Positions 1,314-52,235 of a DNA stretch of 64,000 nucleotides are shown piece by piece. This DNA is from Mantamonas sphyraenae STR306. Lineage: Eukaryota > Protista > CRuMs. Position 1 is the first letter of the stretch; each line of letters starts with the position of its first letter. Position numbers and translations under genes: made by a program. The notes under the pieces are model-generated. The model was not told the origin of the DNA and did no database searches. It saw nothing but the letters and a program-made list of their open reading frames with translations. The stretch spans positions 124,001-188,000 of the forward strand of contig JAPMXV010000044.1 of assembly GCA_026936335.1 (NCBI GenBank). The letters are read 5' to 3'.

Positions 1314-2627
1314 ATGCATACATTGGTTTGGCTGTGTGCTGTGGCTACCTTTCTGATGAACGGCACCCGTGCTCTGATGAGTACGGCTGTAATTCCGCTC
1401 GCGGCGGAACTGAACATGGACCCCGAGGCACAGGCTGCCGTGCTGTCATCCTTCTTCTGGGGATACCTGTTTACTCAGGTGCCTGGCGGATGGCTGGCTG
1501 CCCGGTATTCCCCCGAGGCTGTGTATGCCGTCTCCGTCGCTCTGTTTAGTCTGTTCACCCTGCTCACCCCTGTTCTCGCGTACATGGACACGGTGGGACA
1601 CGGATGGCTGTACATGGCCCGTGTTATAGTGGGTCTCTCCCAGGGTGTGTTCTATCCTGTGCAGAATCAACTGGTCGCCAAGTGGGTTGCTGTGCACGAA
1701 CGATCCACCGCTCTCGGCTTCCTCGGCGCGGCTGCTTCCAGCGCCATCCTGTTTATCATGGCCCTTTTTGGTCCCATGGACGCAGCCATGGGGTGGCACG
1801 GCCCATTCGTGTTGCTTGGAGCGTGTGGGTTGGCCTGGATGGCTGCCTGGCGTGCAGTGACAGCCGCGACCACGCCCGAAGGCCGTCCGGGTCTTGCGGA
1901 CGAGGAGCAAATGGCACTGATTGGAAACGGGGCTGATAACCATGCCAAGGACCAAGCGTCGGATGTGGTGGCCTTCCCGTGGTCCCGCGTGTGGTCTGAG
2001 CCAGCGTTGCGGTGTATTCCTGTGAACCACTTTTGCCTGAACTGGGGTGGCTTTGTGCTGTTCTCGTGGATGCCAACGTACCTACACGACGCCTTGGGAG
2101 TGCACAAGGACATGGTGGGTGTGTACACCGCCGTGCCCTACCTCTGCTCCTTTGTGAGCGTCTATGGAGCGGGCCGGCTTGCAGATCGACTGGTGTCCCA
2201 TCAGCATTGGTCTCTGCTTCGAGTGCGTCGTGTGATGAATGGCGTAGGCATGGCCACCCCGGTGGTCTTTCTGTTCCTTGCAAGCGTGTGCACAGGGGCA
2301 GCAAGCGTAACTGCTTGCATCTCTGTGGCTCTGGCTGCGTCTGTGTGCACTGTGGCAGGATACGAAGCCAACATGCTGGATGTGGCACCTCATCACGCCG
2401 GTCTTCTCATGGGGTTGTCGCAAACGGTCGGTGCTGTGCCGGGCATCGTCGGAGTGGGCTCGGTGGCCACGCTCGTCCAATGGGCAGGCGACTGGTCTCT
2501 TGTGTTTTACGTCACAGCGGCCATGTATGCAATCGGAGGCCTGTATTTCCATGCCAACGTGTCCACCTCGGTGCTGATCGATGCCCCTGCGCCGTCGCAA
2601 CCAGCAGCAGTCGACGCAGCCGAATGA
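1314..2627 (+). CDS. MFS anion:cation symporter, SLC17/sialin-like; intronless
   Basis: About 12 hydrophobic segments; SLC17 motifs LSSFFWGYLFTQVPGGWLA, GLSQGVFYP, KW..HERS, NWG...SWMPTYL, LDVAPHHAGLLMG; first in-frame ATG at 1314. Confidence 0.9.
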   Translation: MHTLVWLCAVATFLMNGTRALMSTAVIPLAAELNMDPEAQAAVLSSFFWGYLFTQVPGGWLAARYSPEAVYAVSVALFSLFTLLTPVLAYMDTVGHGWLYMARVIVGLSQGVFYPVQNQLVAKWVAVHERSTALGFLGAAASSAILFIMALFGPMDAAMGWHGPFVLLGACGLAWMAAWRAVTAATTPEGRPGLADEEQMALIGNGADNHAKDQASDVVAFPWSRVWSEPALRCIPVNHFCLNWGGFVLFSWMPTYLHDALGVHKDMVGVYTAVPYLCSFVSVYGAGRLADRLVSHQHWSLLRVRRVMNGVGMATPVVFLFLASVCTGAASVTACISVALAASVCTVAGYEANMLDVAPHHAGLLMGLSQTVGAVPGIVGVGSVATLVQWAGDWSLVFYVTAAMYAIGGLYFHANVSTSVLIDAPAPSQPAAVDAAE

Positions 2628-3684
2628 AAGACGACGTGCCTGACGTCAACACAGCTTTGGCGTTGGGCTTTTTCGCCACGGCCTGCTTCACACTCCAATA
2701 CCTGCCGCAGGCCATCTTGAATTGCCGCCGTCAGAGCATCAGCGGCTTCAGCACCCTGGGCATCATCATCAAGCATGTCGGCGCGTCCTTCCTGCTGGTC
2801 AACACATATCTGATCAACGGTGAGTTGCGTGCTCAAAGAGCGACCGCATGCACATACATCTGGACTGGAGTGGCACGTGTGCAAGGTGCGTGTGAACGTC
2901 CAGCGACGACTGACTCGACTTTTCTCTTTGTGCGCACGCGAAAAATCCCGCAGAGCCCGTGCCGGTTGTTCTGTACGGCCTCTTCAATGTCTTGCAGCAC
3001 AGCATGTTCATGGTTCAGTTCACCGTGTATGAGTCGGACACCACCTTTCTCAAGTGGTTGCTGTTCCCGCTGCTGCCGCTGTTCCTTGGCCAGTATGCGC
3101 CGTGGACCCTCTGTGAGTTTCGGGGTGGGAAACGGTCCGGGAGAAACAACGCGCGTCGGCTGACACCCTGGCCTGTACTGCTTGCGCACAGATTATACAA
3201 ACTTTGTCAAGCCTCTCGCACAGGTGTTTAGCCACTTTCCTCAGCTCTACGTGTGCTACCAGACCAAATCGACCCAGGGCTGCTCCAAAATGACGCAGCA
3301 TCTGAACCTGCTTGGAGGCATGGCTGGCCTGTACAGTACGTGCCCAGGCCCGCGCTTGTCCCAGCCAAAACCGTGCACATGAAGACTGACGCACACACAC
3401 ACACTCACACACACACACACACACACATCCACATCCACTCCACAGTGTGCTACATTATTCCGCCATACACAAACACAACGTACCTGATTTACATCAACAG
3501 CTGCTTCCAGGCCATCTCGCTGTACATAATGGCCTACCTGTACGACGGTTACCCGTTTGCTGACACGTCGGCACTGATCATGGAGAAGGTGGGTGCGGCC
3601 AAAGGCCATGCTCCGTCTGGAAAGGAAGGCAAAGAAGGCAAACCCGCGGGCAAGGGCAAACGCTTGTTGGTTGCGGATGTGTGA
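2624..3684 (+). CDS. PQ-loop repeat membrane transporter (cystinosin/PQLC-like), 4 exons
   Basis: Exons 2624-2819, 2954-3112, 3192-3335, 3446-3684 join in frame through GTGAGT/GTGAGT/GTACGT..CAG introns; two PQ motifs (LQYLPQAILN, FSHFPQLYVC); ATG overlaps the SLC17 stop. Confidence 0.85.
3392..3427. repeat. Interrupted (CA)n microsatellite in intron 3 of the PQ-loop gene
   Basis: Visible cacacacacacactcacacacac... run. Confidence 0.9.
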
Positions 3685-3756
3685 CGGGACAACATGGAAA
3701 GTGGAAAGATGGGAAATGAAAACAACACTCGTACATTCATATAATCATCATCTGCG

Positions 3757-48723: not shown

Positions 48724-49847
48724 TCACAAGAAAAAACGACGCTTGCTGGCCATGCCCTTCTTCTTGATCCACAGGTACTCGCCGCTCTTGCGATTGAGCA
48801 AGCCCCGCTGCAACGAGCGCAGTTTGAGGGTGAAGCGCGGACCCAGTTCCTGCAACCTGACCTTCTTGGCACTGTCGAAGATGTATCGGTGTTGTCGGAA
48901 AAAGATAAAGTCGCGCTGGTTGTGAAAAGTGATGACACGGCGGCCGTGGAAGTTCGGTTCCTGCGGACTCAGTGAGGCAAACATGCGGCCCACTGTGTGG
49001 CCCAAACGCGTGGTGAAGTTGTTCAGCACAATCTCTGGCTTGTGGGAGGTCATGCGTCCGTGGCCGCGGATGTCTTCGGGCATCACGAGGCTGGTCAGTT
49101 TGAAATGCGCAGTGGGTCCGTCCGGCAGATGCATCAGCCACATTTGGTCTGTGCACATGTGTTAGTTGCCTGTCACTGGCTTGTAGGTCGCCCCCACACC
49201 CAAAGCATCTCCTGCAACTCACTGATCTTTTTGGACTTTTCGTCCACGATGATAATGGCTGTGTAGTCGTGTTTCAGGCCGTAGTCCACAAGTTGCTGCA
49301 CCGAGTTCTTGAGCCGCTCCACAAAGTAGGAGCCCGGAAACACGTTGAGGAGCACACGGATAAAGTCAAACATGCCTGTGGTCGGCTTCCTGCATGTGGT
49401 GATCATGATTTTCGGCTGCTTGCCTGCAAAGTAGGTGCTGAACTCGTCCGTCGCCTCGTCGAAAGCCACCTCTTCGTCCTGTGCATCCACCGTGGTCTCA
49501 TCGTGCTCGCGTTGGTCCTCGATGGTGCGCTGCTTGGCACGTGCAGGCAGCTCCTCGCCCGCTGCCAACAGTTCGGCCTCCTCTCTCTTGCGCTTCTCGC
49601 GCCTCTCGCGCTTGGCACGCGCCTTTTCCTTCTTGCGCAGGGCGTACACCTCGTTGCGCGTCTCTTTGTTGGTGATCTCACTGGTTGGTTTCTGGTACGC
49701 AAAGAACTGTGCGTATCGCTCGGCACGTCGTTCCCGGCTTGACTTTTCCTCCTCTGCCACCTGCTTGGCCACGTGAACACGTTTGGCCTTGTGTGAGCCA
49801 CTGCCGCTGCTGCTGCTACTGCTGCTGCTGCTGCTGCTGCTGCTCAT
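48724..49847 (-). CDS. RPF1: Ribosome production factor 1 (Brix domain), 2 exons
   Basis: Intron 49222-49149; [58 protein letters not shown]-terminal RRFFL. Confidence 0.95.
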
Positions 49848-49922
49848 GTTCGATGCAGGGGGTTTCACTGCGTGCGTCGGCGCAAGAAGACCAAACCTCG
49901 GGCACACACATTCCACCCCCTC

Positions 49923-52235
49923 ATGACGGCTTCACTCGTTGGTCGACAGCACGTGAGTGAGCTGACAAGGAAGCTGGTGCAGTGCAACACGCTGCATGTG
50001 AAGCTGACGTCGTTGTTTGGGAGTCAAACGTACAAGAGGCAGCGGCAAGAACTTGCGTGTGTGGGAGAGGCGGTGGCGAAGCTGCAGACCGCTCTCCAGA
50101 CCCATCTTCAGGAGACATTCAAGCGCAAGCGCAAGGGAGAGCTCGTTGAATCGTTGCGCAACCACAGCAGCAGCTCGTTGTCGAGCCTTGGCAGCGAGGA
50201 GAGCGGTGAGAAGGATGGCGGAAGTCGGAGCAGCAGAAGCAGCAGCAGCAGCAGCAGCAGCCACCACGACGGCGATGCAGGAGAGGGATCGCATGGCTCT
50301 GGGATGGACAGCGGAAGCCTGGATGTGCGAAAGAGGCTGGTGCTGGACATGGTCGGGTTGCTGCTGCCGCTTGTAAACCAGACGCGGACGCTGCTGTCGA
50401 ACCTGGTCGACGCAAAGAGCAACGACAGCTTTGAGTACGCATACACGGACGAAATGCACGAGTTGCGTGTGTTGCGGCAAAAGATGCAGCTTTGCCTGCC
50501 ATACGTGGCGATGGAGGACTTGGTGTTTCCCGACACGTATCTCACGCCCGATTGCGAGGAGTGCAGTCCGTTTGTGCACGTGAAGTACGTGGACAGCAAG
50601 GCCAAGGCGCAATATGACGCGCTCATGCACCTCATCAACGTGACCAACGTGTTTATGGACGGCAAGAGCGGATTCTTTGGGTCGCTGAGTTCGCTGTTTA
50701 GCCCGCAGAAAGCAGCTGTGCGCAGCGACGATGTACAGCTGAACGGGAACGTGCACAAGTTCAAGCGCGTGTGGAATCTCCTGGAGACTGGATCTGTGCG
50801 CACTTTTCAGAACATTGCCATGCCCAAGGTAGGCACGAACCAGATGTTCAGGCTGTTTGAATCGGGCAACATCGACGAACAGCAGGAACAGGACATGCAG
50901 AAACGTCACAGCGTGAAGGCGCGGTTGTTGTATCCGCACGACATCGAGTACCTGCAGGACAAGGTGAGCCAGCAGTCACAGAGGCAGCGGGAGATTGCCC
51001 GGCGCACAGGCAGCAGCGCAGGCGTACAGGAGAAAGACGAAAGCGATGATGGAGTTGTGCTGATGATCAAAGACGATGGAAGCAATGCCTGCAGCACAAA
51101 AGAGGCCATTCACGTGTCCACGGTGATTCTGCACCTGCACGGCGGCGGGTTTGTGGCCATGAGCTCGTTCTCGCATCAAGTGTACACACGTCAGTGGGCT
51201 CTGGACAACGACACTGCCATTGTGTCTGTGGACTACCGCTTGGCACCCGAGGACCCGTTTCCGGCTGGATACCTCGATTGCATGATGATTTATCGTTGGA
51301 TGGTCACGCACGGCCTGGAGCAGCTGGGACTGACGTTTGACCACCTCATCATCACGGGCGACAGCGCAGGCGGCTGTTTTGCGTGCACAGTCACGCTGAC
51401 GGCTTTGGCAGAAGGGCTCAAGGCGCCAGACTATGTGATGCTGAGTTACCCGGCAACATGTGTGGACGACCAGTACTTTCTGCCCTCGAAGCACAGGCAC
51501 ATGGAAGACAAACTCCTGTCGCTGCCGCTTGTGAAGACGGTGTTTTCATCATATGTGCCGGACAAGGAGAGCACTCTGGCAGAATGGGAGCCGTGGCAAG
51601 TAAGCCCGCTGTTTGCGCCGCAGGAACTGCTGGAGCGCTTCCCACGCACTGTCATTCACGTGGGAGACCTGGATCCTTTGCGTGACGATGCGTTGTACTT
51701 TGCACATGCCCTGTACAACGCCGGACGGCCTGTGCGTGTGCGTGTGTACGAAAACCTGGCGCATGGCTACCTAAACATGCAGGACGCGGTGAAGGACAGT
51801 GCACGTGCGTTTGATGACGTGCGAGCGTGGCTTAGGGTCATTGTAGACACGGATTGCAGGGCAGATGTGGCCCACGTGCTGGCAGCTACGCAGGAGAACT
51901 TGAAAGAGGCCATTGATCTTGCCCAGAAAAGCATCCTGGGGCGCATGGTGGCTCGGAAGCAAAATGCGCTCAACGCAGACGACTCTTTCGTGGACGTGGA
52001 GCTGGAGGAGGAGGATGGCGACACGGTGGAGATTGTTCTCGACGACACAGACCGGGAGGCGGCTATCTTTGGCGGACCTGCTGTGATGGCCCACGTGGAC
52101 GAGGAAGGCCACCCTGAGGACTTTGGCGATGTCGGTGACGAGGAGGACAAGTTGGTCGTGGCTGAGCTGGAGAACAGCGTGCGGTTGCTGGAGGCCGAAA
52201 GCGGCGGGGGATCAAAATTAAACGCAGCCCAATGA
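49923..52235 (+). CDS. Hormone-sensitive lipase family esterase; intronless
   Basis: HLHGGGFV, SHQVYTRQWA, SVDYRLAPEDPFP, GDSAGG, DPLRDD, HGYLN; VWNLLET segment typical of eukaryotic HSL. Confidence 0.92.
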   Translation: MTASLVGRQHVSELTRKLVQCNTLHVKLTSLFGSQTYKRQRQELACVGEAVAKLQTALQTHLQETFKRKRKGELVESLRNHSSSSLSSLGSEESGEKDGGSRSSRSSSSSSSSHHDGDAGEGSHGSGMDSGSLDVRKRLVLDMVGLLLPLVNQTRTLLSNLVDAKSNDSFEYAYTDEMHELRVLRQKMQLCLPYVAMEDLVFPDTYLTPDCEECSPFVHVKYVDSKAKAQYDALMHLINVTNVFMDGKSGFFGSLSSLFSPQKAAVRSDDVQLNGNVHKFKRVWNLLETGSVRTFQNIAMPKVGTNQMFRLFESGNIDEQQEQDMQKRHSVKARLLYPHDIEYLQDKVSQQSQRQREIARRTGSSAGVQEKDESDDGVVLMIKDDGSNACSTKEAIHVSTVILHLHGGGFVAMSSFSHQVYTRQWALDNDTAIVSVDYRLAPEDPFPAGYLDCMMIYRWMVTHGLEQLGLTFDHLIITGDSAGGCFACTVTLTALAEGLKAPDYVMLSYPATCVDDQYFLPSKHRHMEDKLLSLPLVKTVFSSYVPDKESTLAEWEPWQVSPLFAPQELLERFPRTVIHVGDLDPLRDDALYFAHALYNAGRPVRVRVYENLAHGYLNMQDAVKDSARAFDDVRAWLRVIVDTDCRADVAHVLAATQENLKEAIDLAQKSILGRMVARKQNALNADDSFVDVELEEEDGDTVEIVLDDTDREAAIFGGPAVMAHVDEEGHPEDFGDVGDEEDKLVVAELENSVRLLEAESGGGSKLNAAQ

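Follow-up and report, generated by a model that had tools for sequence, protein, structure and literature searches.

The question raised by this locus is how one nuclear gene comes to begin within the stop codon of another, and whether such an arrangement marks a functionally linked bicistronic unit, as an earlier note on this DNA had proposed. The junction lies in a stretch of 64,000 nucleotides, referred to here as the window. The plus-strand open reading frame (ORF) that begins at ATG 1314 terminates in GCC GAA TGA, and both direct reading and the ORF listing placed this stop codon (TGA, 2625-2627) in an ATGA overlap with the start codon (ATG, 2624-2626) of a PQ-loop gene on the same strand. 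The overlap between the SLC17 stop and the PQ-loop start is therefore real, and the locus consists, as the note had it, of two complete, co-directional nuclear genes with a common ATGA. The upstream part of the locus comprises the following features.

1203 to 1313, no strand: divergent spacer of 111 nt from the ATG of a minus-strand gene (1202-1200) to the MFS ATG (direct reading, coding-segment map)
1314 to 2627, plus strand: SLC17/ACS-type MFS transporter gene, intronless, 437 amino acids and a TGA (Pfam MFS_1, PDB matches, database search)
2624 to 2627, plus strand: ATGA stop/start overlap (direct reading and ORF listing)

The upstream protein matched Pfam MFS_1 over residues 9-380 (3e-42). 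Its closest solved relatives were VGLUT2 (8e-52) and sialin (1e-49), in an alignment spanning residues 16-415; among other solved transporters, DgoT scored 5e-22 and further MFS proteins approximately 1e-3. Database matches included ACS, ANTR/PHT4, and SLC17A9 proteins, the top match being a bacterial ACS-family transporter with 36% identity, and no homologue above 36% identity was found in the protein collection searched. The nearest characterized relatives are SLC17/ACS proteins and not other MFS families, in agreement with the earlier description of the ORF as SLC17-type. The assignment of a full 12-helix MFS core follows from the VGLUT2/sialin alignment and not from a crude hydropathy scan, which flagged fewer than 12 strongly hydrophobic stretches (nine, of which two overlapped). 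A bacterial origin of the gene was considered but found no support in the tree, which had long branches and gave no resolved placement within SLC17/ACS. The genome contains only one MFS paralogue, which no PQ-loop gene adjoins. The spacer at 1203-1313 is the sole non-coding DNA on offer for the MFS promoter and 5' UTR.

The downstream gene occupies 2624-3684 of the plus strand in four exons. Its three introns are spliceosomal, with GT..AG borders throughout, as had been claimed.

2624 to 2819, plus strand: exon 1, encoding a short N-terminus, TM1, the first PQ motif, and TM2 (Pfam PQ-loop, 1.4e-11; homologue alignment)
2820 to 2953, plus strand: intron 1, GTGAGT...CAG, 134 nt, with a CTGAC branch-like motif (direct reading; exon co-linearity with homologues)
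2954 to 3112, plus strand: exon 2, encoding TM3-TM4 (translation; homologue alignment)
3113 to 3191, plus strand: intron 2, GTGAGT...CAG, 79 nt (direct reading)
3192 to 3335, plus strand: exon 3, encoding the second PQ motif (Pfam PQ-loop, 1.9e-6; homologue alignment)
3336 to 3445, plus strand: intron 3, GTACGT...CAG, 110 nt, with a CA repeat inside (direct reading)
3446 to 3684, plus strand: exon 4, encoding the end of TM6, TM7, and a basic C-terminal tail, with a TGA stop (direct reading; homologue alignment)

Exons 1 and 3 each encode a PQ-loop repeat (Pfam PF04193) with its PQ dipeptide, seen as LPQ and FPQ motifs in the translations. In searches made exon by exon, not with a joined spliced model, the four exons covered protist PQ-loop homologues of 196-252 amino acids end to end, giving a complete, co-linear 7-helix protein; exon 1 shared 60-72% identity with these homologues, and its N-terminus aligned to theirs. 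The nearest relatives were unnamed protist proteins (Physarum, Cavostelium, and dictyostelids). We found no orthology to a characterized lysosomal member (cystinosin or PQLC2), the cystinosin match being 6e-6 and limited to a single repeat. As judged by its relatives, the PQ-loop protein is a member of an uncharacterized protist subfamily with no named lysosomal orthologue.

These identities bear on the proposal that the two transporters are functionally linked, which we could not sustain: the PQ-loop protein has no lysosomal orthologue, the nearest relative of the MFS protein is bacterial, and the pair are not neighbors in the foreign contexts compared. Since all MFS homologues had at most 36% identity, linkage was checked only around distant PQ-loop homologues. 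In the seven foreign contexts compared, all from distant relatives, an MFS gene adjoined the PQ-loop homologue in none (0/7), and the upstream neighbors, where sequence was present, included an MRPL44-like gene and an Nrap gene. Nothing in the two proteins or their neighborhoods points to a shared pathway.

The earlier note had also taken ATG 2624 to be the only in-frame ATG before the first PQ motif. This is wrong, as ATG 2480 lies in the same frame with no intervening stop codon. We rejected ATG 2480 as the PQ-loop start on the grounds that the codon score of 2480-2623 was -36.6 in the PQ-loop frame versus +13.2 in the MFS frame, that the segment of coding potential opened exactly at 2624, and that the N-termini of homologues are equally short. 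The start codon of the PQ-loop gene was shown to be 2624, and both the MFS and the PQ-loop genes were shown to be complete.

It is extremely improbable that the junction is an artefact, whether through an assembly indel hiding a spacer or a fused ORF or through a PQ-loop gene that starts at ATG 2480. ATG 2480 is indeed in frame. In 200 kb of the assembly, moreover, 17 direct frame switches interrupted long conserved genes (a topoisomerase-II-like gene and one for a dynein heavy chain are examples), so residual assembly indels are likely. However, a rate of approximately 1 indel per 10 kb leaves a chance of <1% of one falling within 60 nt of the junction, and even with an indel the last MFS helix and the first PQ-loop helix would be only approximately 100 nt apart. 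The PQ-loop homologues are free-standing proteins of 196-252 amino acids with equally short N-termini, and in the PQ-loop frame the stretch 2480-2623 does not resemble coding sequence (-36.6). A fusion is also implausible on topological grounds, since in these families a 12-TM MFS protein ends in the cytosol, whereas a 7-TM PQ-loop protein begins on the lumenal side.

The two genes leave no space between them in which a conventional intergenic promoter could lie. Within 2440-2630, ATGs occur at 2480, 2523, 2527, 2551, 2581, and 2624, and the last two are separated by the following feature.

2584 to 2623, plus strand: AUG-free stretch of 40 nt closing the MFS coding sequence (ATG listing, 2440-2630)

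A PQ-loop transcript with its putative start in this stretch would have 2624 as its first AUG. K-mer and positional analysis upstream of 28 divergent starts found no promoter or initiator motif, only a C/G preference at -1; such an internal PQ-loop start site is therefore one that we infer and do not recognize by a motif.

The ATGA itself lies within a hexamer that recurs at the ends of genes.

2623 to 2628, plus strand: AATGAA hexamer, candidate poly(A)/3'-end signal for the MFS gene, within which the MFS stop and the start of the PQ-loop gene both fall (position, 3' enrichment, de novo motif, coding depletion)
3715 to 3720, plus strand: separate AATGAA of the PQ-loop gene, its first base 33 nt past that of the stop codon (3682) (position)

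With copies at 2623 and 3715, the MFS and PQ-loop genes each have their own gene-end hexamer. The wider distribution of AATGAA was followed in a sample of 264 kb of the 25-Mb genome, containing roughly 100 genes and approximately 27 curated tandem junctions. Tandem spacers in this sample held 8 copies in sense and none in antisense; the corresponding counts were 0 and 0 over 7.5 kb of divergent (5'-5') spacers, and 5 and 5 over 3 kb of convergent spacers. Altogether, 17 of 48 copies in the 264 kb lay in sense orientation between -2 and +104 nt from a gene-terminal stop; in 4 of these 17 a TGA stop was embedded in the hexamer, and 2 of these 4 cannot be starts. An unseeded expectation-maximization (EM) search over 47 gene ends returned GAATGAAG. 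In coding sequence, we observed 3 sense copies versus 23.2 expected by codon usage, a depletion of approximately 8-fold, and the one-base variants GATGAA, CATGAA, and AATGGA showed no coding depletion. Genome-wide, there were 5,810 copies versus 968 for a control of the same composition. The stop codon of the MFS gene (TGA, 2625-2627) thus sits inside a genome-wide, strand-specific 3'-end motif that is avoided in coding sequence. AATGAA behaves as a general strand-specific 3'-end signal of this genome, and from its distribution we infer a probable role in cleavage/polyadenylation as well as the likely position of the cleavage site.

Only about 15-20% of gene ends had the hexamer within approximately 50 nt, and other gene-end signals must therefore exist. 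When the stop codon was left out, the de novo motif search gave only a weaker TG-N-ATG-R pattern, and broader degenerate versions of the motif had little strand asymmetry; for these reasons, our argument is based on the exact hexamer. The shorter word ATGA was rejected as a general gene-end word, since an apparent 3-fold enrichment came down to 5 of 38 unambiguous convergent ends versus approximately 3.5 expected, which is not significant.

Because the hexamer looks like the usual gene-end signal, the overlap is more likely a matter of packing than of operon-like coupling. On balance, we lean toward two overlapping transcription units, the product of extreme genome compaction and not an operon-like functional unit. 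In such an arrangement, AATGAA 2623-2628 would be in triple use, serving as the MFS 3'-end signal, as the MFS stop (a "dual-use stop codon"), and as the first codon of the PQ-loop gene. Cleavage and polyadenylation of the MFS mRNA would most likely fall inside PQ-loop exon 1, a few tens of nucleotides from the start of the exon. The PQ-loop mRNA would be transcribed separately and overlap the MFS mRNA, beginning in the final ~40 nt of the MFS coding sequence and having 2624 as its first AUG. The coding fraction of the sample is approximately 85-88%, and divergent start codons lie as close as 45-111 nt; promoters and UTRs inside neighboring genes must therefore be routine.

Among the approximately 27 tandem junctions in the 264 kb, the spacer was exactly -4 in four and between 0 and 27 nt in none, and hence the -4 state is over-represented, albeit in a small sample. 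At three of the four ATGA junctions the sequence is AATGA; an A in the -1 position is characteristic of the hexamer but rare at ordinary starts (1/28). The junctions recur between unrelated genes, in one case between a gene for an acidic nuclear-type protein and one for a secreted protein with a signal peptide from the ATG. The window contains a second example, at which an alternative ATG lies 35 nt past the stop.

52232 to 52235, plus strand: second ATGA junction in the window, context CAATGAC (Abhydrolase_3 gene 49923-52235, then an Abhydrolase_1 gene)

Several other candidates were discarded. The 12-mer GCMGCCSAATGA is common to three junctions but has 12 genome-wide sites in mixed contexts and was rejected as a junction-specific signal. 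The near-zero junctions at 49175 and 42788 of the window proved to be introns, the former within a Brix-type gene, and those at C2 147244 and C2 187597 were frame switches within single genes.

As a counterpoint to compaction, an excess of -4 spacers with an empty 0-27 nt class is equally predicted by translational coupling. A bicistronic mRNA would require that some or all MFS transcripts pass the hexamer and that ribosomes stop at UGA 2625-2627 and reinitiate at AUG 2624-2626, in the manner of prokaryotic ATGA pairs, caliciviruses, and influenza B, a reading that we consider unlikely. It is favored by the exact 4-nt overlap with 2624 as the true start, by the lack of a promoter spacer, by the over-represented -4 and missing 0-27 nt spacers among the ~27 tandem junctions, and by the signal peptide that begins exactly at the ATGA of another junction. 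The stop/start overlap (ATGA, 2624-2627) also has the geometry, an overlap or a spacing of a few nucleotides, of viral-type termination-reinitiation. However, no UGGGA resembling TURBS motif 1, the 18S-complementary tether, was present within 100 nt upstream (TGGGA sought in 2521-2623), and reinitiation past an ORF as long as 437 codons is established to be inefficient in known eukaryotic systems that lack a tether (review, PMC10275272). Moreover, the MFS stop coincides exactly with a hexamer that coding sequence strongly avoids, an argument for MFS transcripts ending at the junction. Gene orientation gave no hint of operons either: there were 27 divergent spacers and a similar number of convergent ends among roughly 100 genes, with no sign of the co-directional clustering of operon-bearing eukaryotes, and the MFS/PQ-loop linkage is not conserved in the distant relatives compared. 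Leaky scanning was already thought unlikely in the earlier note, and with a 437-codon first ORF containing many AUGs we concur. The note's special bicistronic unit, in contrast, is not upheld, given that the ATGA sits in a general 3'-end hexamer, that the same junction occurs between unrelated genes, and that the TURBS-like motif is missing.

A broader form of this reading, in which many nuclear gene pairs, including the MFS/PQ-loop pair, are carried on read-through bicistronic mRNAs and the second ORF is translated by termination-reinitiation at the AUGA within AAUGAA, seems to us distinctly unlikely. If true, the two proteins would be made in a ratio governed by whether transcripts are polyadenylated or read through, and the arrangement would be a genome-wide eukaryotic analogue of prokaryotic translational coupling.

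Alternative processing of transcripts from a shared promoter at 1203-1313 could also yield two mRNAs, with polyadenylation at the hexamer giving the MFS mRNA and splicing to AG 2618-2619, either in cis from a 5' leader exon or in trans from a spliced leader, giving the PQ-loop mRNA. An AG does lie 5 nt before the ATG, and a YTRAY-type branch candidate (CTGAT, 2571-2575) lies approximately 44 nt before this AG, a spacing within the range of the three PQ-loop introns. However, an AG and branch motif of this kind are expected by chance, a consensus GT donor is absent from 1203-1313, and the intron would be approximately 1.3 kb long, versus the 50-500 nt seen here. The 20 nt before start codons are T-poor, with no polypyrimidine tract, and no Rfam family, spliced-leader RNAs included, had a match in the window. 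Taken together, these observations make alternative processing very unlikely.

Returning to overlapping transcription units, confirmation of AAUGAA as the signal would mean that this lineage extends the idea of the dual-use stop codon, with one hexamer acting as poly(A) signal, stop, and next start. CRuMs are placed near the base of Amorphea. The locus would also be a clean natural example of the limits of nuclear gene packing in a free-living, intron-containing eukaryote, and would demand an account of how transcription and translation of the downstream gene proceed. In practice, annotation is affected: such junctions will go on being flagged as operons or fusions, by gene finders as well as by readers.

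Translational coupling at ATGA or TGATG is described in bacteria and archaea (PMC6728339), and viral termination-reinitiation in norovirus VP2 (PMC2793014) and influenza B BM2 (PMC3035654). The present case shares with these systems an identical stop/start geometry and an over-representation of -4 spacers among tandem pairs. Unlike them, it has no Shine-Dalgarno sequence or TURBS-like tether, its genes are nuclear and spliced, and the overlap falls on a 3'-end signal.

The first ORF of green-algal bicistrons tends to be short and poor in AUGs, and a spacer precedes the second ORF. Single mature mRNAs with both ORFs have been shown for such polycistronic nuclear loci (PMC7896298), and translation of the second ORF is ascribed to leaky scanning in the excerpted text of PMC11291117. 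Both cases place two co-directional coding ORFs at one eukaryotic nuclear locus. The present locus, known here from genomic sequence, differs in its 437-codon first ORF with many AUGs, in having no spacer, and in the gene-end hexamer at the junction.

Neighboring genes are transcribed in overlapping fashion in the compacted genomes of microsporidia and nucleomorphs. There, as here, intergenic DNA is too short for genes to have promoters and terminators of their own, so transcripts start or end in neighbors, as they probably do at this locus. The genomes in question, at 0.5-3 Mb, are the reduced ones of parasites or endosymbionts, whereas the present genome, at 25 Mb, is that of a free-living organism with spliceosomal introns, and at this locus it is the coding sequences themselves that have 4 nt in common.

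A stop codon lying inside the poly(A) hexamer has been described as a hallmark of compact protist genomes, with examples in Giardia (WGURAA, including AGUGAA), Spironucleus, and Naegleria (AAUAAA), according to excerpts of PMC11529991. As with the Giardia-type stops in those excerpts, the stop codon here is part of a gene-end hexamer that is enriched just past stops, avoided in coding sequence, and linked to very short 3' UTRs in gene-dense genomes. The differences are that the hexamer is AAUGAA, that the host is a free-living, intron-containing flagellate of the CRuMs type, and that cleavage at the hexamer is here a prediction from genomic DNA. A third use, as the start codon of the next gene, is not mentioned for Giardia-type hexamers in the excerpts of PMC11529991; AAUGAA can supply that start codon because it contains an AUG.

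Two genes on the same strand meet at the junction:

1314-2627, + strand, intronless MFS gene
2624-3684, + strand, four-exon PQ-loop gene
2820-2953, + strand, first PQ-loop intron, GT..AG
3113-3191, + strand, second PQ-loop intron, GT..AG
3336-3445, + strand, third PQ-loop intron, GT..AG
2623-2628, + strand, hexamer AATGAA enclosing the ATGA junction (2624-2627)

Analysis of the 437-aa MFS product showed a Pfam MFS_1 match (3e-42), and its best solved relatives were VGLUT2 (8e-52) and sialin (1e-49), with residues 16-415 aligned. These matches make SLC17/ACS-type MFS a fair label for the predicted product and bear out its earlier description as SLC17-type. The best database match was a bacterial ACS-family transporter (36% identity) on a contig with bacterial gene context. 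Eukaryotic SLC17/ANTR proteins ranked behind the bacterial ACS matches, at ~28-32% identity, and a quick tree did not settle the origin of the MFS gene. The downstream gene had been described as a PQ-loop gene with three introns, and it is one, with PQ-loop Pfam matches in exons 1 and 3 and three GT..AG introns. A CA microsatellite lies in the third intron. The PQ-loop exons were searched and aligned one by one, as separate queries; the protein collections searched appear to be without M. sphyraenae predicted proteins. The PQ-loop protein is a member of an unnamed subfamily of protist proteins with representatives in Physarum, Cavostelium, and dictyostelids, and its match to cystinosin was weak.

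Direct reading and ORF listing showed that the MFS ORF from ATG 1314 closes with GCC GAA TGA (TGA at 2625-2627) and that the PQ-loop ATG (2624-2626) overlaps this stop as ATGA, so the stop/start overlap claimed in the earlier note is real. The accompanying claim, that 2624 is the only in-frame ATG ahead of the first PQ motif, was mistaken: ATG 2480 lies in the same frame with no stop between. As the PQ-loop start, ATG 2480 was made implausible by the codon score of 2480-2623, which was -36.6 in the PQ-loop frame versus +13.2 in the MFS frame, and by the coding-potential segment of the codon-usage model, which opens exactly at 2624. Since the four exons between them cover free-standing PQ-loop proteins from protists (196-252 aa) from one end to the other, and since homologues have N-termini as short as that of the PQ-loop protein, ATG 2624 is the start codon.

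The assembly comprises 25,061,354 bases in 78 contigs with GC near 59%; the published assembly, GCA_026936335.1, is given as 25.06 Mb in 78 primary contigs with a GC content of 59.19% (PMC10492846), and the text of that paper makes no mention of "polycistronic," "intergenic," "introns," "polyadenylation," or "UTR." Apart from a genome-wide hexamer count, all junction and hexamer statistics were derived from 264 kb, namely the window, at 124001-188000 of contig C44, and positions 1-200000 of contig C2. Coding calls were made with a model of codon usage that had been trained on long ORFs and that labelled 85-88% of this sample coding. The closest divergent start codons were 45, 75, and 111 nt apart, and in the first two pairs this short interval must accommodate the two 5' UTRs as well as any shared promoter, unless these overlap the genes. 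Among 47 gene ends of the sample, TGA was the stop in 40 (85%), TAG in 4, and TAA in 3. Introns were short (about 50-500 nt), with GTGAGT, GTAAGT, or GTACGT donors, a CAG acceptor, and a branch-like CTGAC/CTAAC motif 25-55 nt ahead of the acceptor. Within long conserved coding regions of C2:1-200000 we found 17 direct frame switches without intron signals, or ~1 per 10 kb of coding sequence.

C2:50621/50667 (piece L016), divergent pair, starts 45 nt apart
Window 49847/49923, divergent pair, starts 75 nt apart
C2:48769, frame switch in a topoisomerase-II-like gene, near the YYKGLG motif
C2:147253, frame switch in a dynein heavy chain gene

The frame switches are most simply residual indels of a long-read assembly; if real, they would mean frameshifted genes. 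With probable indels at a rate of about 17 per 200 kb, the assembly leaves some room for an artefact or mis-model of the junction itself. However, an MFS/PQ-loop fusion is implausible by topology and the PQ-loop homologues are free-standing proteins, and we regard this explanation as extremely unlikely.

An AATGAA-like word recurred at 38 convergent gene ends, where AATGAA and its reverse complement formed the most enriched specific 6-mer; ATGA alone, present at 5 of the 38, was not significantly enriched. De novo discovery by unseeded EM on 47 gene ends returned GAATGAAG. In the 264-kb sample, tandem spacers held eight sense and no antisense copies of AATGAA, convergent spacers held 5 + 5 copies in 3 kb, and 7.5 kb of divergent spacers contained no copy on either strand. 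The sample contained 48 copies, 17 of which lay in sense at -2 to +104 nt relative to the stop codon that ends a gene, and the PQ-loop gene has its own copy at 3715. In coding sense, AATGAA occurred 3 times versus 23.2 expected from codon usage, and GATGAA, CATGAA, AACGAA, and AATGGA were at expectation. Genome-wide there were 5,810 copies versus 968 for a same-composition control. Among the first 100 sites of contig C1, we observed nine close (within 100 nt) plus-then-minus pairs versus two in the reverse order, as expected of convergent genes each carrying the signal. AATGAA behaves as a poly(A)-type signal does. The hexamer at 2623-2628, which holds the MFS stop and the PQ-loop AUG, is therefore probably the MFS 3'-end signal as well. 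A TGA stop was embedded in AATGAA in four cases (window 2623 and C2 58907, 135575, and 140353). In two of these the ATG cannot serve as a start codon: at one, just a 4-codon ORF follows, and the other faces a convergent gene.

Once introns and frame switches had been set apart from real gene boundaries, ~27 tandem junctions were left. Four had a spacer of -4 (window 2625 and 52233; C2 125086 and 135577), none had a spacer of 0-27 nt, and the remainder had spacers of 28-330 nt. The -4 spacer is thus over-represented, in a small sample, as it likewise is in prokaryotes. Of the remaining three -4 junctions, two joined unrelated partners; the pairs at all three were as follows:

Acidic nuclear-type protein, then a secreted protein with its signal peptide starting at the ATG
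Large low-complexity protein, then a small protein
Two hydrolases of different Pfam families

An AATGA context was present in three of the four -4 junctions, and A at -1 in only 1 of 28 ordinary starts, which suggests that the conserved element is the hexamer and not a start context. Window 48724-49853 (- strand) was rejected as two genes 14 nt apart: it is a single Brix/IMP4-type gene whose in-frame stop sits in a 74-nt intron (GTGAGT...CAG, with a CTAAC branch), a warning for other apparent near-zero junctions.

The operon-like interpretation of the pair was not supported. The earlier note had proposed a functionally linked unit, but no MFS neighbour was found at PQ-loop loci in seven foreign contexts, all from distant relatives, and the single MFS paralogue in the M. 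sphyraenae genome, on contig C52, has no PQ-loop gene near it. A read-through bicistronic mRNA, with the second ORF translated by termination-reinitiation, would fit the junction geometry and the -4 excess. It is nevertheless unlikely, as the first ORF runs to 437 codons, no UGGGA tether lies in the 100 nt upstream, a gene-end hexamer is located at the MFS stop, and gene orientation shows no co-directional bias; genome-wide termination-reinitiation is more doubtful still. A model in which both genes share one promoter and splicing uses the AG at 2618-2619 is very unlikely. The best reading, to which we give slightly better than even chances, is that the two genes form overlapping transcription units, in which the MFS mRNA would end shortly past the hexamer, within PQ-loop exon 1, and the PQ-loop mRNA would begin within 2584-2623, a 40-nt stretch free of AUGs, making 2624 its first AUG. 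Under scanning, any transcript starting upstream of a neighbour's hexamer would meet the hexamer AUG first. This would be tolerated only if that AUG were in frame, which would yield the -4 class. In all other cases transcription would have to start beyond the hexamer, giving spacers of ~30 nt or more. Such scanning would account for the missing range of spacer lengths.

In Giardia, Spironucleus, and Naegleria, a stop codon that lies within a poly(A)-type signal has been termed a "dual-use stop codon" (PMC11529991), and the MFS TGA within AATGAA is placed in the same way. The hexamer at the junction may thus be a dual-use stop and candidate poly(A)-type signal that additionally supplies the next start codon. 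What would be novel beyond the known dual-use stop codon is that the hexamer also gives the downstream gene its AUG.
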